Source: Trichosphaerium sp. ATCC 40318 (Eukaryota; Protista; Tubulinea). From it: a stretch of DNA of 64,000 bases. Below the pieces are notes generated by a model, which did no database searches, was not told the DNA's origin, and saw nothing but the letters and a program-made list of their open reading frames with translations. The stretch spans positions 186,001 to 250,000 of the forward strand of contig JALMLS010000277.1 in the NCBI GenBank assembly GCA_038496445.1. The letters run 5' to 3'. Positions 30,195 through 54,067 of this stretch are shown piece by piece. Every line of letters starts with the position of its first letter. The stretch's first letter is position 1. The position numbers and the translations under genes were made by a program.

Positions 30195-31100
30195 CTAAAA
30201 TGGATCTGGTTCAATAATTACTTCACCGTCTATTAATGTAAAAGCTCCTGGACCTAGATACGTTTCAACCAGTACCTTATAGCAATCAACAAAGTCTTTT
30301 CCAAAATATGTCTTAAACAATGACTTAACATCATCTCCAATCTCTTCAAAAGATTCCTCTTCATTTGTACAAAAAGTAAAGCAACAGTACAATTCACTAC
30401 AATCCTTAGGTGTATACCACATAAACCCAGGACAACGAAAAGTTGCATTCCGTCTATAAAGCCTAAAAACAGCAAAAGCAGAAGAATCACGTGCAAAAAA
30501 AAAAATCTTAAAGTTGCAAGAAATATCATCATATACTCCTGGTTCTACATTAACATTATCACATACTAATGTATGACTTGTCTTATTTTCTTCTCTAGAT
30601 ATTTTATAGAATCCAATATCAGAACCAATCTTATCATTAGTAAAAAGAACATCTCCATCAAGTTCTTGACCTATTTTTCTGTTGACATAGTAAGTTTTTA
30701 ATGATGCCTTGTTACTGAACTCTCCAGGTACGAATGTCTTTATATGAGGCCAATTTAGTTGTATAGCAACAGCCCAGAAGTTCCTTGAAGATAGAATGCC
30801 GTTGAACCGTTTTGAAACCAATGGGATGTTTTTTAGAGTAGTATAGTTCAGATACGCAAATATGTACGTTAATATATCGTTTGGGACTAAGGATAACGAG
30901 AAATGACTTGGTTCAGTATCAATATCATTTTCATAGTCTTTCAAGACTTCCAATAGCGTAGATACGTACTCTGGGTTGGTAAGACGCTTTTTAACTTCTT
31001 TGTCGTGTATGCTGCGAACGATGCGTGTTAGATTGGTGACTGTATCATCATGCACACTCGCAATCTCTCTTTTGTGCCTTTTGGGGTATGGTAGGGTCAT
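30195..31100 (-). CDS. F-box protein (intronless, 301 aa)
   Basis: SLVPNDILTYIFAYL..IPLVSKRFNGILSSRNFW. Confidence 0.85.
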   Translation of the reverse strand: MTLPYPKRHKREIASVHDDTVTNLTRIVRSIHDKEVKKRLTNPEYVSTLLEVLKDYENDIDTEPSHFSLSLVPNDILTYIFAYLNYTTLKNIPLVSKRFNGILSSRNFWAVAIQLNWPHIKTFVPGEFSNKASLKTYYVNRKIGQELDGDVLFTNDKIGSDIGFYKISREENKTSHTLVCDNVNVEPGVYDDISCNFKIFFFARDSSAFAVFRLYRRNATFRCPGFMWYTPKDCSELYCCFTFCTNEEESFEEIGDDVKSLFKTYFGKDFVDCYKVLVETYLGPGAFTLIDGEVIIEPDPF

Positions 31101-31722: not shown

Positions 31723-34700
31723 AATCACTTTCTTACAATCTTGGATAGTTTCGGCTTCTTTTTAGAATCATTTACTACTGCAACTGCCTTTCTTTTCACG
31801 TTTGTGGCTATTTATAGAAACAGTAAGTTCCCACGTGATTGATCATTTATAAACAAAAACTTTAAAAGCTGCGCACGCGAAACAGTGATGTAGAGAGTCT
31901 CCCTACCAATTGAACATAAATCAGTATCAAGTGGAAGTAATCTCGAATCGTTGCTTGTATAAAAGCTAACTTTCAAGTTTTGCAATTCTTCAGGCAAGAA
32001 TTTAGTTAGCGCTGAAACAGTATCACCAGGGTAAAATAATGTTCCAGCATTAGCAACATTATACTTTTTCTTAAATCCTTTCAGCACTAATGCTACTCTA
32101 CAATCTGAAATTTTAACAACGTTGCCTAGGCTTGATTTAGCTTACACTCAAATAAAGTAAAAGTGGTACTTTGCTTAAGTACTAATATATCTACCATCGT
32201 AATGTCACTGTCACGGCTATCATCTAATATTGTTGGCAGATGAAGTATGTCGGCACGAATACCGTCATATTCGAAAATAATGTTATGGATATTACTGTTA
32301 TATCCCCGCGCAGTCTTTAGCACACTTTCGTAATAGTTTCTATCGTTGACACTCTTAAAAAATCGAATTTCGTCAAGTGTTGCCTCAGTTGGGTTTGGCA
32401 TTACACCTGAATAATCCAATCGAATACACTCTAAACCAAACAGTAAGCTTTGTTACTCCACTCCTCTAAATACGTACTTCGAAGAAAGGGTATGATAACA
32501 TTATTTTTAGCATCAAAGTTAATGCAGTACCTTCCATGTGGTAGTACTGCAGCTAAACCGATCTTGGCTGAATAATCAATAATCTTTTTTTCCTTGTCAT
32601 ATTGGATTGGCAGTGTTCTCAGCTCAATATAGTCGAAAGTCATACAGTGATTGAACTTGTTTCTGCCTCTTCAAAATCCTTAGCCTCACCTATTATACAG
32701 TCGCTTATGTTCGCGAAGAGCCAAGATCTCTCAGGTTCAAGTTGAGCCAGAGTTTTATGTTGGTCATCTAATGTAACTAGTTGGCCAAAGTCCACCAACA
32801 GTGGTTCGAAGTAGGAGAATCCTAGGAAAGTTACATCACACTGGGGTTTTAAGGAATATATGCGTACGGTATTGTGAGTCAGTACCCACCCAGTTCAAAT
32901 ACTCGGTTGTAGGAATATCTCCTGATTTGAAATACTTGTACATCTAGAATCGTAGAGTAAGTTACCTTGGTTTAAACAAACAGGACAAGAGGCGTACACG
33001 TGATGTTAGAAATTGTTCGAGATCTTTCTCTCCTACGATAATCACCTCTGTAAACGCATCTGGGATAATGAGATTTGTAGAGTTGTTGTTCTTGTTTAGA
33101 ATCAATCCGTCTTTGAGTTTCTTGGAAAGGATTGCAGCGATAATAATTGCAACACGTTTTAGGCCCTTCTCAGGTGTTCCTTTTAAGTGTACTTTATTAA
33201 TTTCTTCTTGTATGTCAGCAAGGGTTCTTGCACTACTTCCTTGCTAAAAGTAAAGCTTAGACCTTACAATAAAATGATGCTAGCGCAAGATAGGGACAAT
33301 TCATAGCACGAGTTTCTCACAGGTGGAATGTGTCTTACAAGTATCTTATAGTTGCCAATAAACGTGGGTGGATACCTTGGTTTGAATAAAAAGTTCGTAT
33401 TCGGAGTTCTTTATCATCATGTCGAATGTATCTGGTGGTGATAGTTTAGTAAAGTACGCATGAAAGATTGAAATTACGCACTAGACTTTTCACCAGGGAT
33501 ATACAAGCCGCCAGCCGCTGCTCTCCACAGCCGACAAAATTCCTCTTTGGTTATACAACCTTTAGATTTCAACTCTTCACTATCCTCCGTGTCTTTTGTT
33601 GCCGATCCCGCATCCTGGACTTTTGGCAATGACTGCGGCTAAAATTGAGGTAAGCGGAAGGTGATATTCTTATTTTTAAATAAGTCGTACTATGATTGTT
33701 GGATCAAATTGTATGGCTTTTTGATTCTAGTAACTTGTGAACCTAAAGTCGGAAACAATTACAACGTACCTCAAGACATGATCCTTTAAAGAGAGAAAAT
33801 ATACCACCCAATGTAGCTTCAGGATGTCTTTGTAGCCATTCGTACATGTACGTTGAAAACCTCCAGTCTACAAACCATTCCATTCGTTTCCCTAACATTT
33901 AGGTTAAATACGAACTTCGCCATTTACTTTACATTTTAAAAATCCTGTTTGTGCTATTTGATTTAGTCTTGTCTTATCCAGTTCATGCTGAATGATGATT
34001 GATTTAATAACGTTGTTACCAAAGTGGTTGAAAGACACTGAATAACCTTGAGCTGACATGAACTCCATTATCAATCTAGGTATCTTAACCTTCATGGATT
34101 GTACGCCATTGATTGTACTAGAAATGAATACCACTGGAGCCAAGTTTAAAATGCGATGCAGAGGAATCTAATAAACAATTAATACTTTTGTAAACTATAA
34201 CCATATTGCAAAGTACCTCTTTGAGTATGCAGTTTTTGTTCTTTGTTCGCAACTCAAACTTTGTTTTGGTGCTATCAAATACATCTTGAGTTATAGGCAA
34301 CATAAATGCTTCTAATACCAACACTTTAGAAACAAATCTGACAGCAGCATCCCAAAAATAACACATTGCATTTGTATTATTGTTTGCAAGCATTTCACCA
34401 TAAGCATCATCTAAAAGCCTAAAAAACCTGCATGAGTCTTCCTTATACGATAGAAACACAGCACCTTGTGGCATCAACTGGTTGCCCCTTTCTATTCAAG
34501 AGTATGGCAGCGATGTATCCTATGAAATAATTGACCATTCGCGGTAAACCAGCTACAATCAAGGTAAGATTAAAAGAACAAAGGTGGGTTTTACCTGTTT
34601 TATCATGTATTCCCTCAATCAATTTTTTTAAAATAGGCTTATCCAGTGAATCAAGTGCTGCATATAATTGTCTTTGAGTGTCGGTACTTTTATACGGTTT

Positions 34701-35878
34701 TACTATCTCTATTTGTTCTTCTATAGCTTTCAATGTATCTTCAGTACTTAGTGGCTACCAGTGATTAGGGCTTCATAGAAAAAGTATATTCGTTAAGTAC
34801 TGGTAACACTAGCCACATTGACTGTGAAGGAAGAATTGATTGAGCATCATTCGGCAAGAACAGGGTCTCATGAACAGAGAATAGCGGCAATAGGTTCTTT
34901 CCTCCAACGCTGTGTGGTTGTAGCATAAGAGACCATAGGAAGTTAAGTGTTTTACACTTTGAATTGTGCACCCTTCCGTGTTGCAGAATTTGATTGAATT
35001 CGTCAATCATTACAACAACAGAAAAGTTATTCGTCTTCCAATACTCCTCGAATACCTCCTCTACACAACTTTAAAACAATTTTAAATAGTAACATGTACC
35101 TATGGTAGGTTTATTATTACCCAGGGCAGCTTGAATAGCGTGTAATATAAACACATGTGAATCTAGAGCGAGTTTTGTTGATAAGTTAAAGGCAGTTTGT
35201 TGAACAACAGATATTTACCTTCTGCACCACAGCTCTTCTGACCATTGATGAAAATGAACTTAGAGTGTAGCAAATGATCCTTTACCCACTGTTCTAAATC
35301 TTGATTTTCGTTAAAATGACCATCAGCAACCAATGTGCGCATGGACTCCTCAAGATTCTTCAAAAATTGTGTTTTCCCTGTAACGTAGCTATTACCATCA
35401 AAATAAATTTCGAGATGTGATTCATACCACTTCCAAAATATTGGGCTAGAAACGGCACAGACAAGTTTGCCGTTTCACAAGAGTCAAGTCTATTGTTCCT
35501 GTATGTGTACCAGTGTCTAGCAAGTTTCCGATATTGATTGATGCGAGGCCTCAATTGAAAAGGGAGGCTACCTTTTACTCAAGTTAAAACGCGTACATTA
35601 GTGTTAATGAATACCTATGCAGCATTGTAGGAACGATATAGACATTGTAGTGGTATAGTTATAGTTTATTCCTGAAGTGTAATACCAATAAAAAGAAGCG
35701 GTGCGAACGTTGTAGCAATTGGATTTAAGCTTTTTTAAATAACTGAGTTAAGTCAACGTTCTTTCAATCAAATTACATTCTGGTAACAAGGCATGTAAAG
35801 ATACTCAAGAGGAATAAACAAACACGTATATAGTAGTATGGGTACAACGACTTAGTGTCTTGATTGATTACCAACAAC
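31723..35878 (-). repeat. Arm 1 of ~4.15 kb inverted duplication
   Basis: Its reverse complement matches ~49905-54067. Identical ORFs appear in both arms (MIDEFNQILQHG.., MAPVVFISS..). Homology stops 2 nt after the stop codon. Confidence 0.95.
31725..35645 (-). CDS. Crinkler-like P-loop NTPase + PD-(D/E)XK nuclease with variable C-terminal domains, copy 1 (apparent 1-nt deletion near 32661)
   Basis: Spliced Walker A LAQYFGSG|KT, Walker B VVVMIDEF, nuclease motif YIPGEKS|NTFDMMIK..LFIQTK, C-terminal KRK..KKKPK NLS. Confidence 0.7.
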
Positions 35879-35922
35879 CTCAAAGAAGAAAACTCAACAA
35901 CCTTTTATTCGGATTTGTTTAT

Positions 35923-36801
35923 TTACTGTCTTTGTATCTGCTGACAAAATAACACATCAACAACTATACCTAGCTTCTCTATATCAAGGTATGCACACCT
36001 ACGAATCCTTTTCTTGAGCATACCAAGTCTTTTAAGGGTCCATGTAGCACGCCTGATATCTCGTACAGCAATCTTTGCATACTTTGGAGTGTAATCTTGA
36101 GTATCACAATCTGATCTGAAAATTGTAAAATCAGGACCAGCGCCAAGTTGCCACGTGCATTTTCTGCTATCTGTAGTACATGCTGTTTTCGTGTCGTCAG
36201 TACCGGTAACAGGAGAGAACAATCTAGAGTAGTTGATTACAGCATTAGGCCAAGCATTTGTGGATATTGCAACTCCAACTTCTTCGGCATACTGAACACC
36301 AAGGGTTCCTCCGTTACTTCGAAGTAACCTGTTCCAAAGTAATAACCGTACATTACTAGCGTCAAAGAAGAAGTAATCCGTAAAAAAAGTAAGCATACCA
36401 CCACTGAAGATATCATCAAAATCAAGTAAGTTCGTATTAGTAAAAGTAGGTAAGTCAAGTCTGAAGAATGATAAATTTCTTGATGCCAGTCCATCGAAAA
36501 GATTCGTGATATTATCACCGACTTGCTGGAATGATACACCTCTTATATCACGAATGATTTCAAAGTTTACGTTACCAGCACTGAAACCACCGCTGACAAA
36601 ACCTCCGAAATCTGCGAAAGGAAAAGCTACTGGTAATCCAAGAACTTTTGTAAAAAAAGCATGTGTTTTATTCAGTTGCTCCAATGTAGCATTAGGTCCG
36701 TTCAATAGAAAGTGGTCTATTTGTTCAACTACAGCTTGTGACTTTGTAATTAAACAAAGCAAAATAAATGCTATAGAAAACAATAGAGAAAGAGTACGCA
36801 T
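35923..36801 (-). CDS. Secreted glyoxalase/VOC-like protein (intronless)
   Basis: Signal peptide, then IDHFLL..FFTKVLGLPVAFP..GGFVSGGFSAGNVNFEII, resembling bacterial Glyoxalase_3-like proteins. Confidence 0.7.
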   Translation of the reverse strand: MRTLSLLFSIAFILLCLITKSQAVVEQIDHFLLNGPNATLEQLNKTHAFFTKVLGLPVAFPFADFGGFVSGGFSAGNVNFEIIRDIRGVSFQQVGDNITNLFDGLASRNLSFFRLDLPTFTNTNLLDFDDIFSGGMLTFFTDYFFFDASNVRLLLWNRLLRSNGGTLGVQYAEEVGVAISTNAWPNAVINYSRLFSPVTGTDDTKTACTTDSRKCTWQLGAGPDFTIFRSDCDTQDYTPKYAKIAVRDIRRATWTLKRLGMLKKRIRRCAYLDIEKLGIVVDVLFCQQIQRQ

Positions 36802-37334
36802 GATAATCTCAACACGTGGGTTTGGTTAGGATGTGAACGTGATTTTTTGGTGGAGGTTTAAGTTAACTGTTGGACTTAACTTTGGCTCCGGCATGATTGT
36901 TTGCCCGCAATCTGCTAATGCACTTGGTATTTAATATAACTGGATACCCGAATTCTCAAATATTCACCTTGTCTGGGTAACTTTTGGCTGAACAAACTGT
37001 TACTTAAGCAAAACGTGATTTGACGATTTTCTTGTGTTTATGGTAACAGGTTTACCCGAGAAGGTAATTTATGTTTGAAAATTACAACAAAAACCAAGCA
37101 GCATTCACCAAATATCAAATAGGTGAGGGGTGTTTATGGGTTTTCTGTGATTTAATTTTAACACAGTTCGGGTGTGGGTTTGCTTTCAACTTTGGACGTC
37201 CTGACACTAGCATAAATTTAACCCTAGGCGATAGTATGCTTTCCTTTGGCAATAATACGATGAGTATTTCTCACGACAGATAATTTATTTGTATCAAAAA
37301 AGGAAGAATGAAAAATCAAGTTATTGTACTGGTT

Positions 37335-38474
37335 CTATGCCTTGGCATTATTAACAACTTTTGCATTTGGATTTGGTGTACTAGGTGCAACCTCTGGTTT
37401 TTTATGTTGTCGTCTAAGCATTTGTTAATACATGTCATAGCGAAAGCAATTTCTCAAAAAAACCAGAAAACTGTTTAAAATGAAAACAAACTACAAAAAA
37501 GAAAGTATCACATACCCCATAAGAACGCGCTCAAGTTGTAAAGGTGCTATAACCATAGGACAATATTTTGGCTCAATAGGATGAAGAGTACTACTTGCCA
37601 AAAGAATCTCACTAACAGTAAAGCGAGCGAATTCATCATCTTTGAACTGAGCAAGCACGTGCTTTATAGCGTCGCCCTTGTTTTAAATGGTAAATACCAA
37701 ACAATCTATGTATTCATATATACCTGTTCTGGCTTTATATACACATCTGACCAACGTGCAATAGTAATATGAGGACTCCAACGTTCTTCTTCTATCTCAA
37801 TTCCTGCTTCCTTCCATTTCGTTTGTAATTCTGAGTGAAGGGTATTTATTTCTTCTCTACCGTCTCCTATACCGAGCCATAGCTTGAAAGCTTCGTCAGA
37901 ATACCTTCATATACATTATAACATACCACTCGGGGCTTTGCTGGTCTTGGGAATACACCAACGCCTTTGATACCGACTTGAAAAGGTTTCATGTTTTTTG
38001 TTGTTTTAACCATGATTTCTGACGCTTTTTTAAAGGTTTCTGGCTATTACAGGTTAGCAAATAATGACTGAAGCGAGTGTCACTGCTTGTAAGCGTCAAA
38101 CCTCTTGTAATTTGGATCCAAAGTATTGAAGGGTAAGGTGAATGTTATACTCACTCGTCCAGTTGATTTTTTGGTTACTTGGTAGCTTTGAACGAAGATC
38201 GCTTTGTGTTCGTTTTATTCCTTCCATACAGTGCGCATTAGATGGCCACACGCCAACGAAATGCCTACCCGGCATCAATAGGTGTTACAGTGTCGGGCGA
38301 AATAATTTAACAATACTATTAACGTATTACGCGCCCCTGGTTCACTACGTACCTCGAAACTGAACCGCCATCATTTGCATAATGTCGCACTGAGGCGGAT
38401 GTAGAAGCTCTAGTACTACTAGTGGTAGTACAACTGCATGCCAAGCGATTACGTGATGCCACCCGTAAGAACAT
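37335..38474 (-). CDS. 2H phosphoesterase, ThpR/LigT (RNA 2',3'-cyclic phosphodiesterase)-like, with probable mitochondrial presequence
   Basis: RHFVGVW, NIHLTLQYFG, GVGVFPRPAKPRV, WSPHITIAR (two HxT motifs). Exon 1 MFLRVASRNRLACSC..SVRHYA is Arg/Ser-rich with no acidic residues. Confidence 0.85.
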
Positions 38475-38837
38475 TATGGACAATACAAACAGAAAAAAAA
38501 CAACGACTTTCAAAAAACAGCGAAATTTCTTATTTTATACATTAAACCACAACCACTTTGATCTATCCTACAATACAAATATGTTTTCTGGGCGAGGGAT
38601 GCTGTTTAGAAATGGTGAACTGCCAAGCCTCAACCAACGTTTTTTTTTTTTGAATGTGTTAAACTTTGGTTTTGTTGGCTTTTCTGGCGTCTAGAGATAC
38701 CACTTATTCAAACTGGTATTGCTGAACACTAGCTAGTATTTGTACATCATTGACGTGTGATGGTGCTCTTTGATAGTGGGTGATATGTTTGAAACATTGG
38801 TATTTTCTAATTGCAGCCCTTTGGACCAAAAACGAGA

Positions 38838-40218
38838 CTATGTTGATGGAGCTTCAACACATTTTCTAACAGCTTTTATGAGCCACCTACCAGCAAATTA
38901 TTAGCAACAAACAGCATGATAGTTTTTTTTTTTGAAGGTATGAACTCTAGAAAGTACCTTTGTTTACTTCGCTTCCCTATCAGCTTAAATCTATCCCAGT
39001 CCCATGAAACGTTGGGATAAACCAAACGCAATACTCGGTGATAATATCTAATAAAACCTCCTGCCCCAAAGTATTCAGCAAGTTGCTTCTGAGACACGTG
39101 ATACCTGTTTGACATAGACTCTATCAATAACAAAAATACAACAAAAAAAAAGAAAGAGGTTACCATGCATCCATGTTGCTTTCTTCATTAATGTCGAAAT
39201 GATGTGCCAGCTTCTCGAGAAATTTCCTCTGTGTACTCTTACTGAACCAGCAAGGTCTTACATAACGCTTAAGTTTAGGTCCTGAGTTCGGTGCCAAAGT
39301 ATTTAAAGCAAACTCAAGATCATGATTGTATCTAAAGAATATCTGTTTGTCAATACAAAACCCAACCTTCGTTCATGTAAATCAAGACATTACCTCTTTA
39401 CAATGGATCTCATTGCTGCATATTTACTACCAATAATATCAATCTTTTTCCAGTCATCAGCACAACAGACATTTAGTGTATCAGCAAGTCCATGTAGTGC
39501 TTGTTTTTGATTTTCTAAACTGTCCCAATATCCATTTGGAGCTGCTCTGTATCACTATAAATTATATCATAAATACAACTAATACGTACCTAAACAACCA
39601 CGGCTTCCAATCATACTCTGGATAAATTGTTTTGAGGGCATCGTACACAGAACCGTTGTGACTAAAAAAACGTTTCAACTTTCTTTTTTTCACAATTGCA
39701 ATAAAAATGTATTATTAAAGCTATCAGTGTTACTTACACGTTCACTGCTATGTTTCCACATGGTTGCTTTACAATTTCACGCAAAGAAACGTTGTACCAA
39801 GCGTCAAAAGTTCTGACTTTGAACTTCTTGCCAATGTCTTCGAAAAGCTGCCTTCTGTTCTTTAATGCATCCCAATGGCCATTCGGTATACCTCTTTGCG
39901 TTGTTAGGCATATTAGACGAGTTTGTAACAAACAGTACTTGAACAAGTGCGTCTTCCATTTAAAATTGGGATACAGCGTTGAAATACACTTAGGTATTGA
40001 TGCACCATAACTTGTAATGGTTTAGAGCGTTAAACGTTAAAAAGATAAACTAACAAGTAATCTACAATGTGACGCCCTCCAAGGTCAGATATGATAGGTC
40101 CTGATACTTTATACCAACCACTGGCTGTGCGAATTTTCAGAACTTGCGCACACTCGTCAAAGAACTGCCGTTGGTTCTCTATGCTCTTCCAGTATCCTTT
40201 AGCTCGCCTTACTAGCAT
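38838..40218 (-). CDS. Trp-rich tandem-repeat protein (about 4 repeats), same family as 25299..27741
   Basis: GYWKSIENQRQFFD..WYKV; PNGHWDALKNRRQLFEDIG..WYNV; PNGYWDSLENQKQ; ends W|YHVS..WDWDRF..KRSKQR|WL. Confidence 0.75.
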
Positions 40219-40684
40219 TGTCGCTTGTTAAACGTCAATATCATGGCAGGCAACTCTCAACGTAGGGTGTTACTATACACTAGTTAATTTGGCTATTAGG
40301 GAGAAAAGTCATGATTTGTTCAACGTCAAACTCATACTAGTCTTCGTAAACACATGAAAAGCACGTGCGTCTATGAAACTCAAAGCAATTATCATTCGCT
40401 TATCTTTTTCATCTACGGCCATGCAACCTGATGGCAGATGATACTTTAAGGCCTGCATAGCTCACATTTGAACGACAAATCAATATCGGGAATCTCTAGT
40501 CAATGCCTCCATCTGTTATACAATCACATGTCGATAGTTATTGTAATGTATTTATAAAAAAGTTACCATTTTAAGTGCAAAATAAACCATAAGTTGAGAA
40601 ATCAAACTCAGAAGTCTTAGTTTTTTATGTACAATTTCTTTCTTTTCAACATACTTAATGTTATTTCATTTTAACTCTTTATAA

Positions 40685-43600
40685 TCAATTTGATTTAGTA
40701 CTTTTATGTATAGATTCCAAAGATGAAAGAATCTACAAAGAATAAATAAACATAACAGAGCAACCCACAAAAACAGAAGAGAAATAATTGTAATATGAAA
40801 AAAAAAAACACAAACAAATACATACTCTATCACAAGAAGGACGTCTGATTTGCTGACCCGACCAACACTGTCCAATAAGTGATTTTAATTCAGGTAGCAT
40901 ATTCGCATCCATAGTAGGACGTAATCCTTCACTGGCCTATAAAAAACAAAGTGAGTAGTTGAAACTTGAGTTGTAATTCAATTAACAAATGAACTTATCG
41001 AAAAAAATACACGTGACTTGGCACGTGAAAAATCTTACCTGTACAAGAACTTGCATCTCCATTGGATATTGTTTTTCATACTCTTTAAAAGGACCTTCGT
41101 AATGTCCTTTTATTTGACGTGTGAAAAGCTCCCAAAGAATAATACCTAAAACAAAAGGTGTCAACTTTCTTTCTTCAACCTTTGTTTTGAAAAAGTGTTT
41201 GCTTTAATACGCACTTAGAGAGTATATATCACTCTTGATAGTAAATCCCTTGCACTCAAATACTTCTGGTGCAATACAAACAAAAGTACCACGACACTTC
41301 ATAAGAGTGTCTTGAAATGTATCAGTGTTGAACCGTGATAAACCGAAATCACAGATTTTAATTTCCCAATCTTCGTTAACCTTTTAAACATAATCAGTAT
41401 CCTGGCGTCATACTTGTAAGCAACGTACCAATAAATTCCTACTCTTTAAGTCTCGATGAAGTATTTGGGGCTTATGAGAATGGAGAACACGAAGAGCCTT
41501 TGTTGACTGAATGGCAAAAGAGAAAACCCTATCCAGAGTAAACTCTACTTCTGGATCTGCCAATACATCATAAAGACTTCCACGCTCACAAAACTCCATC
41601 ACAAGACATAAACGCTCTTTTACACAAGCACCATAAAATTGTACAGCATTAGGGTCTCTTAGAGAGCTATTAAACAAAGGTTAGTCAAAATATAAAACAA
41701 AAGTATTGTCTTGTAATTTAGTACTTACACAAAGACTTCAAATTCACGTTGGAACTCGTCTTTATCCATTGCGTTATTTAATACTTTAATAGCGACTATA
41801 TTTTCTCCCATAAGAAGACCTTTGTATACAGTACCTACATGTAAGGTTAGAAGAAATTCAACGGACGGATTTATTGAAAACAAATGTTACGAACCTGAAG
41901 TGCCATCACCAAGTTGGTTATTAAATTCAATATCTTCTGGCTCAATCTCCCAAGTCCATGGTTTGTCATCTCCTGGACTCCTTGGAGATGGTGCGACAGT
42001 AACTGGCGCTTCCATTGGTTTACGTTTATCAATAGCCTTCTTCAAATAAAAGCGTATAGAACTAAAGACTAATTAATGTTTCTGTTATTAAAAACTACAC
42101 TTGCCTTTCTTTCTGTCTGAGATGTTTCCTCCTTAGAGCATTCTCTCTTTTCAGCTGCATGGATTCATCCTCTTACATAGATATTAATAAAAAAACAAAA
42201 ATAATCAGACAAACTTACTTAGTAGCTTGGTAGATGATGTTAAAATTGTTCTACAATGTGTCTCACTAGGTATAAGCTTGGCTAGTATTTCAGGTGTCAC
42301 ATCCTCCAATGTGTACAAGAACAAATCATTCCTAACAAACAGAGGTAGGTACTCAATAAGTCCAATATCTTTCAGCCAATCAGATAACGCTATAATCCCA
42401 TCAGCAACAAGAATCCTCAAAGAGAAGAAAAAAAATTAAAAAAAAATAAAACGAACCCAAACAATCATTAATACGTCCTACAATCATCTTAAACCCTTGT
42501 TCTTGAGCCAATTCACATGGTGTCTTTCCTTCCGCGCCTAATTGCAAAATTACAAATCAAAAGAAACACCCTGTCAGCAAAAAAAAAGCGTACTTTTGAT
42601 CGTAACATCAGCTCCACAAACCAAAAAGTACGTTACTAAATCTTCACGTCCTAGTCTCACAGAATAGTGAAGTGGTGCTTCTCCCTTTTTATTCACTATA
42701 CAAACAAGAAGTAAGCATTTAAAAAGAAAATGTCAAAAGAAGCTCAAAAAGCTAAAATCCCAAAGAAGTATTTGGGAAAAAAACGAACCTATGTCCGGAT
42801 CTGCTCCGTTGTTGAATAAAATATCAAACACTGTATGTTTAAGAGACATATTAAATACAGCTAAGTGCATTGGTGTCTCTCCATAATCATTTTGAGCGTT
42901 GATTTGTGTTTTACGAGAAAGAAACAATTCGAAAGGTTCAGTCGAATTCGATTTATAGTTTTTGCATAGATAATGAAATGCTGTATTGCCACGTTTGTTC
43001 TTCATCATAACATCAATATCAGGATGCTCAAGAAGTATTTTAAGACACTTTACTGTCTCTTCTGTCCAGAGCTTACGTATAACAGCGTTATGAAGAACAG
43101 TCTCGCCATTATCATCTTGTCTATTTAGACCATATATTTTTTTCTTACCAGCAAGAATAGATTCTATTTTCTTTACATTGGACTCTTGCACAGCCTTGAA
43201 AAGCTGGTTCATTGATTGCTTTGTAGCATCCATTAGCATTTCTTTGAGTTTACGATCATTTTTTGTCCTACCCTGCAAAGTTGTTGTCAAAACAAATCAA
43301 AAAAAAACGAGAAAAAAAAAGTATTAATTTTTGACATTGTTCTAACTTGGCATGGTATTGTTCAAATATAACCACATATTATGACCATACCAATGTGCGA
43401 ACAGGGAAAATGAATGCGCGTATATGAAGGTCACCAGTTACATCATCTGTCAACTTGATTGGTTCAAGCTCTAAAGCATTGTGTTAGTTGCAAATGGGTT
43501 TTTCACTTCGTGTACCTAACCACAAATCTACCTCCTTGCCTGGCTCTATATCATCTAGGTCGAGCTCAACCATACCCATACGATCGTCCTTGAACGTTTT

Positions 43601-44123
43601 TAGATACAGAGAAAACGTAATTCGCGGGTTTTGTTCTAACGAACCTGACTAAACTTATCCTTGTCGAATACTTTAAATACTATCTCAGTAACGCGTTTGG
43701 GGTTGTATTTACTACGTTTATCATAGCTAATTAGCAAAACGTATCTTATTACAAGTTACGTACAATTCGAAGACTTCCACCTGCGATCCGATACCCCAAA
43801 CAGGATTTAAAGTGCAATTAATTGTTTTGGTCTTTTTTTTAAATTTGCCAACTGTGACAGTTACGTATGGATCAGATAACCCATTACTATATGTATGAGC
43901 GCCATTAAAAAACAAAAATACGCACTCGTCCATAGAGATCAAGTCACGCCCCTCAATTACTACAGAACGCAGTCAATATCCGAAAGGTTGAATACTAGTG
44001 TAAAATGGAGTTCGCCCGTTAAACGTTGGGTCTCTACCAATTAAAGAATGTGCTGGTGGCCCATACACTACGCCTTCGCCTCATACCTTCTACACGAATA
44101 CGCCGGTAGGTCTTCATACTCAT
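40685..44123 (-). CDS. C2 - ankyrin repeat - SAM - TKL protein kinase
   Basis: C2 [13 protein letters not shown]; ankyrin GETVLH, GNTAFH, GETPMH; [16 protein letters not shown]; kinase [25 protein letters not shown]. Confidence 0.9.
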
Positions 44124-44311
44124 GAGCTTACTGCGAGAGCTCAATATCCTACTCTTAACACTAACCTTACTCATCTAGCCCCAATCAACCAAGCTCGTGA
44201 CGTGATGAAAAGTTAGACTTCTAAAGAATTCTGTCGATTTTTTTGCGTCAAATATTGTTTTATGATTTTTATTACTGTACATTGGTTTTTTAAAAGTTTT
44301 TAAGTAAATAC

Positions 44312-45721
44312 TCACGCGCCAAATCTTGTGCGAAACATTTTAAAAAATGACGCTAACTCTTGTTCCACATTATGTACACCAGTAGCTGTCACAGTAGGTC
44401 TAGAACCTAGTCTATCATACTCCCTAATGAAACTAATTAACAATGTGATTTCGACAGTGTAGCTTACCTCTTCATTGTTGGATCTGTCAGTGTGGTGTAA
44501 GCTTGATTAAGTACTTTAAACGCCTCTGCTGCACCTTAATAAAATATAAGCAAACGAACAAATGAACAAGGAAGTATACCTGGTGCTTTGTTTCTATCTG
44601 GGTGTACGTGCAATGCAGCTTTTCTAAATTTCTTTTTCATTTCAGCAGCCGACTCATTGCGTGTAACCTTCAGCACTTGGTAAAAGTCGGTGCAATCAAG
44701 CATGGTGTCAACCTCGCGCTTTTGATCAACAGTATACTCGTCATTTGTTTGTGCAATATCAATATACTTACGGCGTGGTAATTGCACTATACTACCAACA
44801 TCAACCTACACAAAAGTCAATAAGATACGGTGTAATCCCTTTTTTTTTATCGTACCACAGGTGGTGCCTCACGTGCTTCCTTTAACTTTTCTGCCTTTAA
44901 ACGAGCAGCCTCTTCTTTGAGTTTTGCAGTTTTTGCATTCAGTTGAGCAACATACCGGCTTGTCTCAGCTTGAGAATTTCGGAGTTCAGCTGTATTAAAA
45001 TGGATCTTATACATAGGCTCAAACCTCCTCTTTTTAGCAGAAGATTTCGGTGGTTGAGTTCTAGATCCTCCTGTGTTGAGCTTCGTTGATGATGGCTTCT
45101 GAGGAGCAAGATTAACAAATCTGTACACCCGAGGTTGTGTTGACTTCCTTGGTGCTGGTGATGACCGTTTAGGTTGTGACCTTTGTTTTGGCTTATTATG
45201 GGAACTATTACTCATTGATGCATTTGACGTAAGAGGCGAGGAATAGTTTGAAGTGTAGCTTGTTTTTGGTTTCAGTGCACTTTTACGGATTTTAAACGGG
45301 TTTCGTATTTTATCTTCTACCGACGTGAAACGTGCTGAGGGACTAGGCGGTGCTAAAATAAAATTAAAATGACACGTAAAAAAATTTTCAAGCGTGCCAT
45401 GTACTCTTTGCTTTGTACTACGCGTGTAAGTTGGAATAGTGCTTGTGTATTGAGAACTAGGCCATGAGAAAGCCTCTGTAGTTGTAGATTGCCGTTGAGA
45501 CTCTCCTCGTTTTAGTAGCTCGTCTGTAGCGCGCTCAGGGTCACCACCTAACAATTGTGTTTAGCAGTTATTCTACATTGCCGCTATTATGTACCACATG
45601 ATGTAAGAACTTCGTGAAGCGTGTCTAATGGTATATTGGGAAATGAGGCTTTCAGAAACTAGAGAATGATTAACTACGCTATCGTTTGTGCTGATCTACG
45701 CACCTCCCATTTATCAGACAT
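44312..45721 (-). CDS. CUE-domain + C-terminal J-domain (DnaJ) protein
   Basis: N-terminal FLKASFPNIPLDTLHEVL..GGDPERATDELL (CUE FP..LL); DFYQVLKV..KKKFRKAALHVHPDRNKAP..AFKVLNQAY (HPD). Confidence 0.85.
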
Positions 45722-45863
45722 GAAGCTTCATACAATAGTCGGTTTTTGTTGAAAATAAAAAACTGGTAGAATTCAGAAATAATTTAAAAAAAGGTGAAAA
45801 CATCGCCACATTGAACTCAGACCGGCAAGAGTAATAAATAGCGTATTTTACACAAGCAAAAAG

Positions 45864-46755
45864 ATGTTAGGATACAAAGGAATGCGCTGTGCCATGCGAT
45901 ACTCAAATACGCATTGTAAGAGGTCTAACATCGCAAAGATGAATGTTACTGTATCAAACAAAAACACAAGGTTCGAACGACCTACTTTCATAACCTTACG
46001 CAGTAAAGGGTAGTTTTAAGAGCAAAGCAGACATTTTCAGCGCCATTGAGGCAGCATTTCATTTTCTCGGACTTATCGCTTAGACGCCACTCGAAACTCG
46101 GCTCCTTTAACACCTCTCGTTGGTATTGTACGTTACATCATAATGTTAGCGTTGTAATAAATGACAGGTTCAACAGCACCTTCAAACGAGGCTAGTATAG
46201 GACAAGTAGAACCACAAATGGCAGTACGCGCTTCAGTATTCAATACCATGTTATCTTAACCTCTTCAAACCAGGCAGTATTTACTTGTAAAAAGTGTAAA
46301 ACGCGAACAGCCAAAACTTTCTCAAAAGAATCTTACACTAGTGGAATTGTCATTGTTACATGCCCAGGGTATGACACTACAAAAAAAAAATTATTACAAG
46401 TTGTCCAACATATTGCTAGGTGTAAAACAAATCATCTCCTGGCAGATAATATAGGATGGTTTCATGATAATAATAAAAATGTTGAAGATTTCTTAAAAGA
46501 ACAAGGAGAACAATACAGAAAAGGTTTGTATAGATTTAATTAGTACATGTGCTGATCTTAGTCTTACCAATTAATTCGTTCTTAGGTAAGCTCGGAGATA
46601 TACAGATATCAGCAAAAGAGTTTGACATGGTAAAAAAGAGCTTTGTCGAACGTGTTGAACAAATACCTCGGTTAAAGACACAAATTGGTGAGAAGCCATT
46701 GGCAGATGCAAAAGCGGTTGAGAATAAGGAGAAAAATGATGCAGTTACTGAATAA
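45864..46755 (+). CDS. DNLZ: DNL-type zinc finger, mitochondrial Hsp70 escort (Zim17/Tim15/HEP1)
   Basis: FTCKKCKTRTAKTFSKESYTSGIVIVTCPG|CKTNHLLADNIGWF; basic N-terminal presequence. The start is approximate. Confidence 0.9.
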
Positions 46756-47029
46756 ATATGTTTGTTGTAAATACGTGTTATTTAACGTCGCGAGATGACG
46801 CGAAAAACGCACAAACCATTCTTAAAAGGTGACATTTGAGATTTTTTTTGTAGACGTCTTAGTCCGCCGTAGTTATTACACGAAACGTACCAGTCACGAA
46901 AACGTCACTAAAAATTAGTTGCAAACTACAAGTCTTTATAATGCTTCTCTACGCTTAAATATTACAATTCATGCGCATTTTTTCGCTTTATAAGCGGTTT
47001 GATGAATTTTATCTGCAATTCGCTATTTA

Positions 47030-47075
47030 TGACGTGGCGAAACCATGACTTAACAGACTTAACACTGTGACGTGT
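47030..47075 (+). promoter_or_regulatory. UPRE-like bZIP sites upstream of BiP
   Basis: TGACGTGG at 47030-47037 and TGACGTGT at 47068-47075, within 75 nt of the BiP ATG. Confidence 0.6.
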
Positions 47076-47101
47076 CTACCAAACAAACAGAAGCAACCAT
47101 C

Positions 47102-49674
<2,573 letters not shown>

Positions 49675-49904
49675 GTCGTCTTTATTTTTTTTATTGTTCC
49701 AAGACTTGCAATTTTTTCTCTTTGAAATATTTTTTTTTGTAAACCAAAGAGGAAAGTTGTTTGTCTTCAGATTGTACCATTGGCAATAAATATTTGCTAT
49801 AAAGTAATCGCTGGTGTATCTTGTTTTTTTAGTACAGACGAAAGTCGGCTTACCTTGGTTGCGTCCACATTTTGTGCTTTTATTAGTATGTTCTTAATTG
49901 CCAT

Positions 49905-52900
49905 GTTGTTAATCAATCAAGACACTAGTCGTTGTAACCCATAGTATATATACACCGGTGCACTGTATTAACGGGTGTTTATTTATTCCTCTTGTGTATC
50001 TGTACATGCCTTGTTACCAGAATGTAATTTGATTGAAAGAACGTTGACTTAACTCAGTTATTTAAAAAGAGCTTAAATCCCAATTGCTACACAACGTTCG
50101 CACCGTTTCTTGGTATTACACTTCAGGAATAAACCATAAGTATACCGCTACAATGTCTATATCGTTCCTACAATGCTGCATAGGTATTCATTAACACTAA
50201 TGTACGCGTTTTAACTTGAGTAAAAGGTAGCCTCCCTTTTCAATTGAGGCCTCGCATCAATCAATATCGGAAACTTGCCAGGCACTGGTACACATATAGG
50301 AATAATAGACTTGACTCTTGTGAAACGGCAAACTTGTCTGTACCGTTTCTAGCCCAATATTTTGGAAGTGGTATGACTCACATCTCTTAATTTATTTGAT
50401 GGTAATAGCTACGTTACAGGTAAAACACAATTTTTGAAGAATCTTGAGGAGTCCATGCGCACATTGGTTGATGATGGTCATTTTAATGAAAATCAAGACT
50501 TAGAACAGTGGGTAAAGGATCATTTGCTGCGCTCTAAGTTCATTTTCATCAATGGTCAGAAGAGCTGTGGTGCAGAAGGTAAATATCTGATGTTCAACAA
50601 CTGCCTTTAACTTATCAAAATCGCTCTAGATTCACATGTGTTTATATTAAAAGCTATTCAAGCTGCCCTGGGTAATAATAAACCTACCATAGGTACATGT
50701 TACTATTTAAAATAATTTTAAAGTTGGGTAGAGGAGGTATTCGAGGAGTATTGGAAGACGAATAACTTTTCTGTTGTTGTAATGATTGACGAATTCAATC
50801 AAATTCTGCAACACGGAAGGGTGCACAATTCAAAGTGTAAAACACTTAACTTCCTATGGTCTCTTATGCTACAACCACACAGCGTGGGAGGAAAGAACCT
50901 ATTACCGCTATTCTCTGTTCATGAGACCCTGTTCTTGCCGAATGATGCTCAATCAATTCTTCCTTCACAGTCAATGTGGCTAGTGTTACCAGTACTTAAC
51001 GAATATACTTTTTCCTATGAAGCCCTAATCACTGGTAGCCACTAAGTACTGAAGATACATTGAAAGCTGTAGAAGAACAAATAGAGATAGTAAAACCGTA
51101 TAAAAGTACCGACACTCAAAGACAATTATATGCAGCACTTGATTCACTGGATAAGCCTATTTTAAAAAAATTGATTGAGGGAGTACATGATAAAACAGGT
51201 AAAACCCACCTTTGTTCTTTTAATCTTATCTTGATTGTAGCTGGTTTACCGCGAATGGTCAATTATTTCATAGGATACATTGCTGCCATACTCTTGAATA
51301 GAAAGGGGCAACCAGTTGATGGCACAAGGTGCTGTGTTTCTATCGTATAAGGAAGACTCATGCAAGTTTTTTAGGCTTTTAGATGATGCTTATGGTGAAA
51401 TGCTTGCAAACAATAATACAAATGCAATGTGTTATTTTTGGGATGCTGCTGTCAGATTTGTTTCTAAAGTGTTGGTATTAGAAGCATTTATGTTGCCTAT
51501 AACTCAAGATGTATTTGATAGCACCAAAACAAAGTTTGAGTTGCGAACAAAGAACAAAAACTGCATACTCAAAGAGGTACTTTGCAATATGGTTATAGTT
51601 TACAAAAGTATTAATTGTTTATTAGATTCCTCTGCATCGCATTTTAAACTTGGCTCCAGTGGTATTCATTTCTAGTACAATCAATGGCGTACAATCCATG
51701 AAGGTTAAGATACCTAGATTGATAATGGAGTTCATGTCAGCTCAAGGTTATTCAGTGTCTTTCAACCACTTTGGTAACAACGTTATTAAATCAATCATCA
51801 TTCAACATGAACTGGACAAGACAGGACTAAATCAAATAGCACAAACAGGATTTTTAAAATGTAAAGTAAATGGCGAAGTTCGTATTTAACCTAAATGTTA
51901 GGGAAACGAATGGAATGGTTTGTAGACTGGAGGTTTTCAGCGTACATGTACGAATGGCTACAAAGACATCCTGAAGCTACATTGGGTGGTATATTTTCTC
52001 TCTTTAAAGGATCATGTCTTGAGGTACGTTGTAATTGTTTCCGACTTTAGGTTCACAAATTACTAGAATCAAAAAGCCATACAATTTGATCCAACAATCA
52101 TAGTACGCCTTATTTAAAAATAAGAATATCACCTTCCGCTTACCTCAAGTTTAGCCGCAGTCATTGCCAAAAGTCCAGGATGCGGGATCGGCAACAAAAG
52201 ACATGGAAGATAGTGAAGAGTTGAAAGCTAAAGGTTGTATAACCAAAGAGGAATTCTGTCGGCTGTGGAGAGCAGCGGAAGACGGCTTGTATATCCCTGG
52301 TGAAAAGTCTAGTGCGTAATTTCAATCTTTCATACATACTTTACTAACTATTACCACCAAGATACATTCGACATGATGATAAAGAACTCCGAATACGAAC
52401 TTTTTATTCAAACCAAGGTATCCACTCATGTTTATTGGCAACTATAAGATACTTGTAAGACACATTCCACCTGTGAGAAACTCGTGCTGTGAATTGTCCT
52501 TATCTTGTACTAGCATCATTTTGTTGCAAGGTCTAAGCTTTACTTTTAGCAAGCAAGTAGTGCAAGAACCCTTGCTGATATACAAGAAGAAATTAATAAA
52601 GTACACTTAAAAGGAACACCTGAGAAGGACCTAAAACGTGTTGCAATTATTATCGCTGCAACCCTTTCCAAGAAACTCAAAGACGGATTGATTCTAAACA
52701 AGAAAAACAACTCTACAAATCTCATTATCCCAGATGCGTTTACAGAGGTGATTATCGTAGGAGAGAAAGATCTCCAACAATTTCTAACATCACGTGTACG
52801 CCTCTTGTCCTGTTTGTTTAAACCAAGGTAACTTACTCTACGATTCTAGATGTACAAGTATTTCAAATCAGGAGATATTCCTACAACCGAGTATTTGGAT

Positions 52901-54067
52901 TGGGTGGATACTGACTCACAATATCGTACGCATATATTCCCTTAAAACCCCAGCGTGATGTAACTTTCCTAGGATTCTCCTACTTCGAACCACTGTTGGT
53001 GGACTTTGGCCAACTAGTTACATTAGATGACCAACATAACCCTCTGGCTAAAATTGAACCTGATTTCACAGATTTTCTCTTTGCGAACATAAGCGCCTGT
53101 ATATTAGGTGAGGCTAAGGATCTTAATCGGGAAGAAAACAAATTCAATCATTGTATGACTTGCGAATATATTGAGCTGAGAACACTGTCAATCCAATATG
53201 ACAAGGAAAAAAAGATTATTGATTATTCAGCCAAGATCGGTTTAGCTACAGTGTTACCACATGTAAAGTTATGCAAAAACTTCGATGCTAAAAATAATGT
53301 TATCATACCCTTTCTTCGAAGTACGTATTCAGAGGAGTGGAGTAACAAAGCTTACTGTTTGGTTTAGAGTGTATTCGATTGGATTATTCTGGTGTAATGC
53401 CAAACCCAACTGAGGCAACACTTGACGAAATTCGATATTCAGAGAGTGTTAAGTATAGAAACTTTTATGAAAGTGTGCTGAAGACTGCGCAAGGATATAA
53501 CAATAATGTCCAAAGCATTATGTTCATATGTGGAAATGCTGAGGGCACGGAAATTGCAAAAACAGCACTCACGTGGCAGGAGAAAAATAACATCACGCTA
53601 TTAGATGTATTCGTACATAAGAAAAGTACTCTCTTTTAATTTAGTTTGGACTGAAGCTAAAACTCAAGCATAGGTTTAGAAATTTCAGTTTGTAGAGTAA
53701 TTTTAGAACCAGTAGGTTTTGAGAAAACGTATCCGGTATTTACCAGTGTTGGAAATATATTTTACCCTGGTGATACTGTTTCAAAGCTAGATAATTACTT
53801 ACCCGAAGAATTGAGAAACAAAGTCAGTTTTTATGTTGACATCTTTCACTCGAATGAAAGATTACTTCGACTTGATACTGAATTATGTTCGCTTGGTAAG
53901 GAGACCCTAACCATCGCCTATTCATGTACACAAGCTTTTATTATAAATGTCACCACGTGGGAACTTAATGTTGTTTTCTATTTAGCCAAAAAAGTAAAGA
54001 GAAAGGCAGATACGGTAAATGATTCTAAAAAGAAGCCGAAACTATCCAAGATTGTAAGAAAGTGATT
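49905..54067 (+). repeat. Arm 2 of ~4.15 kb inverted duplication
   Basis: Inverted match to 31723-35878. Confidence 0.95.
50153..54065 (+). CDS. Crinkler-like P-loop NTPase + PD-(D/E)XK nuclease with variable C-terminal domains, copy 2
   Basis: Same motifs as copy 1. The frame is open where copy 1 is shifted (REENKFNHCM). Ends KVKRKADTVNDSKKKPKLSKIVRK*. Confidence 0.72.

Follow-up and report, generated by a model that had tools for sequence, protein, structure and literature searches.

The locus described here raises the question of what kind of protein is encoded by a gene that occurs twice, as an inverted pair, in a 64,000-nucleotide stretch of the Trichosphaerium sp. ATCC 40318 genome (contig JALMLS010000277.1, positions 186,001 to 250,000; this whole stretch is hereafter the window, to which all coordinates refer), and of how this pair came about. 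The account we favour, to which we assign a probability of roughly 0.4, is that a resident gene rich in introns underwent an inverted duplication long ago, and that its product would be a nuclear DNA nuclease regulated by nucleoside triphosphates (NTPs). At present, this is an orphan gene pair with one well-supported domain, a predicted P-loop nucleoside triphosphatase (NTPase), and one plausible domain, a putative PD-(D/E)XK nuclease.

A preliminary description of the window had claimed a 4.15-kb inverted repeat containing two gene copies that point apart across ~14 kb of unrelated genes, and this arrangement was borne out by both repeat search and alignment. The repeat search returned six collinear arm pairs that are 91–98% complementary (32266–35692 vs 50106–53532), and full alignment set the limits of the arms at 49903–54067 (+) for arm B and at 31723–35876 (−) for its inverted partner, arm A, corresponding to ~4.15 kb each. 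Arm B comprises the whole gene and, ahead of its start codon, 250 bp of DNA that both arms share; the likeness stops at the stop codon. The 5′ ends of the two genes face a spacer of ~14.0 kb (35877–49902), such that copies A and B point away from each other. The genes in this spacer are unrelated to the pair and include a secreted 292-amino acid open reading frame (ORF), an ankyrin protein, and an intron-containing Hsp70/BiP gene, among others. Besides A and B, no further copies of the gene, and likewise no internal repeats, were found in the 64-kb window.

The gene model was built manually on a three-frame display of copy B in which the differences between the copies had been marked, and was then checked by script; the splicing of both copies is thus a modelled one. 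Copy B (50153–54065, +) is open throughout its 19 exons and 993 codons, and copy A (31725–35645, −) has the same 19-exon structure with all splice sites kept. The exons of copy B in this manual model are 50153–50183, 50227–50370, 50420–50578, 50630–50692, and 50732–50991 (exons 1–5), 51039–51198, 51241–51314, 51352–51576, 51626–51860, and 51902–52023 (exons 6–10), 52067–52102, 52155–52311, 52362–52417, 52550–52795, and 52850–52925 (exons 11–15), and 52973–53320, 53368–53625, 53674–53925, and 53986–54065 (exons 16–19), all on the + strand, as are all further features of copy B. The 18 introns have GT-AG borders in both copies, with lengths of 37–132 nt and a median of 47 nt in copy B, and ten of them have a GTAC donor, a donor style that the neighbouring BiP gene (47350–49674) shares, together with the intron size. 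We note that introns in this region are very short (about 40–75 nt), and that such frequent use of GTAC donors is an unusual preference. Seven of the eight exon-internal indels between the copies are multiples of three, and the remaining length differences in the genomic alignment that are not divisible by three sit in introns. The exon model is therefore supported by its conserved GT-AG sites, by mostly in-frame exon indels, by the frame-neutral placement of the other differences in introns, and by donors resembling those of BiP.

Intron 5 (50992–51038, 47 nt, GTACTT...TAG) contains one such 1-nt length difference, which consequently leaves the frame of copy A unbroken; an alternative placement of this intron at 51035–51072 was rejected, as copy A would then look frameshifted twice. 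Only the start codon at 50153 is able to open the Walker A exon, which it reaches via a 43-nt intron that is 100% identical between the copies. The uncertain parts of the model are the 36-nt mini-exon 11 together with introns 6 and 18, which are in frame. The segment 52024–52154 can be read either as a single 131-nt intron or as introns of 43 and 52 nt flanking the 36-nt exon (52067–52102), with the frame kept either way. Introns 6 (51199–51240) and 18 (53926–53985) of copy B are stop-free multiples of three, so that the frame would survive their retention; intron 18 of copy A has a stop.

P-loop NTPases are characterized by a GxxxxGK[ST]-like Walker A motif after a hydrophobic strand and by an hhhhDE Walker B motif ~90 residues further on. 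Both motifs had been anticipated in the preliminary description as emerging upon splicing, and both are recovered in the spliced protein, at the expected spacing. Walker A, AQYFGSGKT (amino acids 53–61, 50352–50427), is split after GSG by the 49-nt intron 2 (50371–50419), with the strand VPFLAQY preceding FGSGKT (amino acids 56–61), and Walker B, VVVMIDEF (amino acids 147–154, 50773–50796), lies 92 residues from Walker A and aligns with the Walker B of DUF1703 proteins. Farther along, the sequence LVLPPLSTED (amino acids 216–225, 50980–51056) spans intron 5; an L.PLS.(E/D)(E/D) motif commonly follows the core of AAA/STAND-type ATPases. In hhalign comparisons of amino acids 1–300, the Walker A region was placed on the Walker A of Escherichia coli YjiA (P 0.0014) and on a Simkania AAA_14 ATPase (P 0.0033), and a 115-sequence DUF1703 profile, seeded with a bona fide Simkania plasmid DUF1703 protein that also served as a control, was matched with P 0.0026 and a score of 31.0. 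This score was reached by one of 150 shuffles (shuffle mean 16.9, standard deviation 3.4), and the negative control DnaK gave 0.64. Among its language-model neighbours, the Walker B exon lies closest to two unnamed clusters, from Campylobacterota (0.94) and Mucoromycota (0.92), followed by AAA_35, ATPase_2, AAA-ATPase_like, DAP3, and TniB. Based on the Walker motifs, the placement by hhalign on three real P-loop proteins, and these language-model neighbours, we consider the assignment to the P-loop NTPases sound. DUF1703 is matched no better than unrelated P-loop proteins are, and thus we leave the NTPase subfamily unspecified.

This NTPase begins almost at the N-terminus, as the preliminary description had proposed, with only 52 residues ahead of the Walker A strand. 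Crinkler/RHS-type (CR) proteins normally carry an N-terminal header of ~130 amino acids, which is either ubiquitin-like (Ubl) with an LxLFLAK motif or helical. Neither a header nor a signal peptide is present in the predicted protein, and the upstream exon that could have supplied a CR header was sought in the 250 bp shared by both arms, where no coding exon fits and all frames contain stops. As the BiP gene ends 478 bp upstream of copy B, these stops leave no room for a header of ~130 amino acids.

The second domain is suggested by a nuclease-like core at 52245–52417, which is defined at the motif level and comprises an acidic helix (KEEFCRLW), NTFD (with D559), and ELFIQTK (with Q572 and K574). 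The preliminary description had pointed to a motif of this kind divided between exons, and upon splicing across intron 12 it indeed reads IPGEKSNTFDMMIKNSEYELFIQTK (amino acids 550–574), preceded by the acidic helix; exon 13 is 100% identical between the copies. Following IPGEKSNTFDMMIKNSEYELFIQTK are a helix, the hydrophobic strand VAIIIAA, another helix, and the strand-helix element EVIIVGEKDLQQFL. Judged by eye, the D...QxK signature after an acidic helix (KEEF..., TFD, IQTK) shows a motif-level likeness to Mrr_cat, and the order and spacing of the elements are collinear with the catalytic domain of E. coli Mrr (FE...GY, GIDG, VQAKR, ELQAF, VFITTS, LVDGERL). The rest of the putative restriction-endonuclease (REase) domain would be encoded by exon 14 (amino acids 575–656, 52550–52795), as indicated by its language-model neighbours (0.81–0.86), which include Mrr_cat, RE_AlwI, the FokI cleavage domain, HinfI, and NA-iREase1; nine of its ten best Pfam-bearing neighbours belong to one restriction-endonuclease clan. 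Exon 14 itself lacks the D and QxK residues, and yet its neighbours are REase families. Taken together, we consider the presence of a PD-(D/E)XK nuclease fold to have somewhat better odds than even.

Our homology searches used exon-sized pieces, which reduces their sensitivity. When 1.84 billion representative proteins were searched exhaustively by HMMER with the Walker B exon, there were no hits at E 0.001, with even the protein itself missing; this query carried 14 residues that are now assigned to intron 5. Pfam, NCBIfam, and PADLOC searches with all exon pieces returned only noise, and scans of metagenome and viral contigs gave no relatives. AAA-ATPase_like (PF09820) gave no Pfam match to the exon pieces at E values up to 10, and a local DUF1703 hidden Markov model (HMM) scored −0.9 bits. 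The suggestion in the preliminary description that this could be an undescribed family is consistent with the finding of zero relatives, at the sensitivity of exon-sized queries. We regard the pair as a real, lineage-restricted gene pair for a predicted NTPase and a probable nuclease.

The two copies differ very unevenly along their length. Over ~400 bp (51388–51788, +), the arms are 100% identical, introns included, and this segment is likely a gene-conversion core, judging from the alignment. The rest of the first 3 kb shows 96–99% identity, exons 16–18 with their introns 54–89%, and the final kilobase just 55–89%: identity is 89% in exon 16, 70% in exons 17–18, 54–62% in introns 17–18, and 88% in the last exon. 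Codons 1–681 are 97% identical, with 0.047 synonymous (dS) and 0.013 nonsynonymous (dN) substitutions per site and a dN/dS of 0.27, and codons 1–297, which encode the NTPase, have a dS of 0.066, a dN of 0.009, and a dN/dS of 0.13; by these ratios, codons 1–681 are under purifying selection. The variable C-terminal region encoded by exons 16–18 (amino acids 682–968, 52973–53925) has 67% amino acid identity, and every indel in it but one is in frame. The corresponding values are a dS of 0.256, a dN of 0.231, and a dN/dS of 0.90 for codons 682–968, composed of dS 0.096, dN 0.109, and dN/dS 1.13 for exon 16, dS 0.292, dN 0.351, and dN/dS 1.20 for exon 17, and dS 0.485, dN 0.305, and dN/dS 0.63 for exon 18. 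The mosaic identity, together with a dS of 0.047 in codons 1–681 vs 0.26 in codons 682–968, argues for duplication and conversion: the pattern fits arms that stem from an old inverted duplication, with the 5′ three quarters homogenized by gene conversion, and it also fits a 3′ quarter that conversion would have left alone and in which selection would have been relaxed or diversifying.

In exon 16 of copy A, an A-run (32655–32670, −) is one base shorter than in copy B (B position 53135), and under the simplest model this single-base length difference (near 32663, at approximately codon 735) breaks the frame; we have read copy A through this site with an X. An optional intron of 122/123 nt (GTGAGG...TTCAG, at 53108–53230 in copy B) in exon 16 of both copies would bypass the break.

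The preliminary description had further placed extra sequence and a nuclear localization signal (NLS) at the C-terminal end of the protein, and this also holds. The variable region is followed by a bipartite NLS tail, KKVKRKA-x8-KKKPK... (amino acids 969–993, 53988–54062), which is 84% identical between the copies while the sequence preceding it is 56–59% identical. The C-terminal ~290 residues have no match to anything.

According to the account that we favour, a resident, intron-rich protist gene would have been duplicated as an inverted pair, with gene conversion holding the promoter and the first ~680 codons near-identical and with divergence in the ~310 codons that precede the NLS tail. 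The duplication, the pattern of gene conversion, the coding constraint, the P-loop motifs, and the NLS are shown by the analysis, and the mode of action described next is inferred. The predicted product of ~993 amino acids would be a nuclear protein composed of an AAA/STAND-like P-loop NTPase, a helical middle, an Mrr-like PD-(D/E)XK nuclease, a fast-evolving region, and the NLS, which would bring the protein into the organism's own nucleus. There, the NTPase would gate the D...QxK nuclease, and the variable region would set target recognition, as in NTP-dependent restriction enzymes and NTPase–REase conflict modules. The nuclear and endogenous parts of this account are supported by the conservation of the NLS tail amid divergence and by the absence of a signal peptide or header. 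Going a step further, the pair could represent a eukaryotic family, so far undescribed, of nuclear and NTP-dependent restriction-like enzymes that lack a header, maintained as a gene-converted pair and acting against invading DNA or in intragenomic conflict, which we consider unlikely. NTPase–nuclease fusions recur as weapons in genome conflict, as in bacterial restriction enzymes, DUF1703 proteins, and Crinkler toxins, and an active nuclease at this locus would mean that such a module works inside a protist nucleus with no delivery domain. If the account is true, the recognition region diverges between the copies while conversion keeps the enzymatic core constant, and such a pair would offer a testable model for how eukaryotes diversify DNA-targeting specificity.

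A number of results weigh against this account, most of them through the nuclease. Pfam gave no match for exons 12, 14, and 15 or for a 77-residue peptide over exons 12–14, and a sequence search of the PDB with two exon pieces (including exon 14) returned nothing above noise. HMMs of Mrr_cat (PF04471) built from 120 close domains and from 17 diverse domains scored −1.6 and −0.6 bits, respectively, hhalign comparisons with Mrr profiles stayed at shuffle level, and amino acids 504–656 scored under the shuffle mean against the PDDEXK_9 part of DUF1703. AlphaFold2 models of single exons gave no structural support (predicted local distance difference test score, pLDDT, of 36 for exon 16 and 33 for exon 5), and the language-model values of 0.81–0.86, with ~100 shared features, are modest. 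The nuclease fold is hence without statistical support and rests on the motif and on the language-model neighbours. The earlier claim of a PD-(D/E)XK nuclease is plausible: the D...QxK motif, its Mrr-like flanks, and the neighbours of exon 14 speak for it, and the Pfam, Mrr_cat, and DUF1703 profiles found no match. Beyond the nuclease, the near-unity dN/dS of the C-terminal region is as compatible with relaxed constraint as with diversifying selection, copy A could be a pseudogene, and no RNA run is listed.

These failed profile tests of the nuclease region would be expected if the protein were a P-loop NTPase only, serving as a STAND/AAA-like scaffold or signalling ATPase, with a fortuitous D...QxK and a non-catalytic remainder. 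Short motifs of this kind do arise by chance, and, according to the documentation of the language-model search, consistent families also occur for a third of shuffled proteins. The motif, however, lies within a full alpha-beta-beta-beta-alpha-beta pattern collinear with Mrr, REase neighbours are drawn independently by exon 14, which is devoid of it, and the complete conservation of exon 13 also speaks against a chance motif. On balance, we find an NTPase-only protein doubtful.

Compared with the favoured account of an endogenous nuclear nuclease, a closer kinship with CR effectors would mean that the gene is a true CR effector that has lost its header, with an NTPase, helix-turn-helix (HTH), and REase series homologous to that of CR toxins, and that it targets other cells or behaves as a selfish toxin. 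The C-terminus found most often in CR proteins consists of NTPase, HTH, and REase, and the site of action of CR products is the nucleus (Zhang et al. 2016, as summarized in PMC5289972); the order of NTPase, helical part, and putative REase domain is the same here, nuclear targeting is predicted here too, and in both systems paralogues diverge and recombine. CR homologues have been reported in amoebozoans, and teleosts have a Crinkler-like selfish gene with a degenerate header, AACRNL (PMC12957317). With AACRNL already described, a header-less state is not unprecedented, as this gene is a case of a free-living eukaryote keeping a Crinkler-type toxin module whose header no longer works; it carries, however, an ADP-ribosyltransferase, not an NTPase–nuclease, and flanking transposons, not seen here, accompany its spread. 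An unnamed Mucoromycota cluster among the neighbours of the Walker B exon is also in line with a CR origin. Against this, the defining Ubl or helical header and a delivery signal are absent, and no sequence link was made to any CR protein. Furthermore, an extra ~310-residue variable region and the NLS follow the putative nuclease here, the introns and the base composition, which is uniform throughout the region, are host-like, and bacterial DUF1703 proteins have the same domain order. Thus, we judge descent from a CR effector to be unlikely.

In these bacterial DUF1703 proteins (PF09820 + PF08011), the ATPase comes first, without a header, and the PD-(D/E)XK nuclease after it (PMC6387759). The Trichosphaerium protein resembles them in its header-less N-terminal ATPase, in a (putative) nuclease in the same polypeptide, in a similar spacing between Walker A and Walker B, and in paralogues that recombine. 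In contrast, the PF09820 and PF08011 models miss all pieces of the protein, the 115-sequence profile gives a generic P-loop match only, and the protein is twice as long, intron-rich, eukaryotic, and predicted to be nuclear. With Mrr-type enzymes and NTP-dependent type IV restriction enzymes such as McrBC it has in common the D...QxK signature, with an acidic helix before it and helix-strand elements after it, as well as the coupling of an NTPase to a (here putative) nuclease; it differs from them in that no significant HMM or hhalign score was obtained against Mrr, and in being a single chain with the NTPase first, encoded by a eukaryotic nuclear gene.

The arms could also be the ends of a mobile element in the style of a composite transposon, or the product of a transposase-like selfish gene that copied itself, given that two inverted NTPase–nuclease gene copies flank a cargo, that TniB-like ATPases are among the language-model neighbours, and that exon 16 has weak insertion sequence (IS) transposase neighbours, whose score of 0.76 is at chance level and below the useful level. 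We rejected a terminal-repeat transposon, as the arm ends carry no terminal inverted or direct repeats and a housekeeping BiP gene lies inside the spacer; in addition, there are just two copies in 64 kb, and the identity pattern is that of gene conversion rather than recent insertion, leaving a mobile origin very improbable. The slightest chance is that of a decaying duplicate pair with no present function, for which the frame-breaking difference in copy A, the near-neutral dN/dS of the C-terminal third, and the lack of a listed RNA run could be cited, but which is hard to square with an open copy B of 993 codons across 19 exons, with a dN/dS of 0.13–0.27 in the first two thirds, and with indels that stay in frame and splice sites that stay intact even where the two copies have diverged.

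Turning to the surroundings of the pair, the 292-amino acid ORF (35923–36801, −) carries a clear signal peptide at its N-terminus and matches no Pfam family. Located outside the repeat and oriented like copy A, it sits immediately upstream of this copy, with 277 bp between its end and the start codon of A; the corresponding place at copy B is occupied by BiP. Just past the 3′ end of copy A, a 301-amino acid ORF (30195–31100, −) has a weak, below-threshold match to PRANC (E 1e-3) and contains an F-box (E 1e-6). Finally, the two arms (31723–35876 and 49903–54067) share 3 kb of 97–100% identical inverted sequence, between which homologous recombination could invert the 14-kb spacer.

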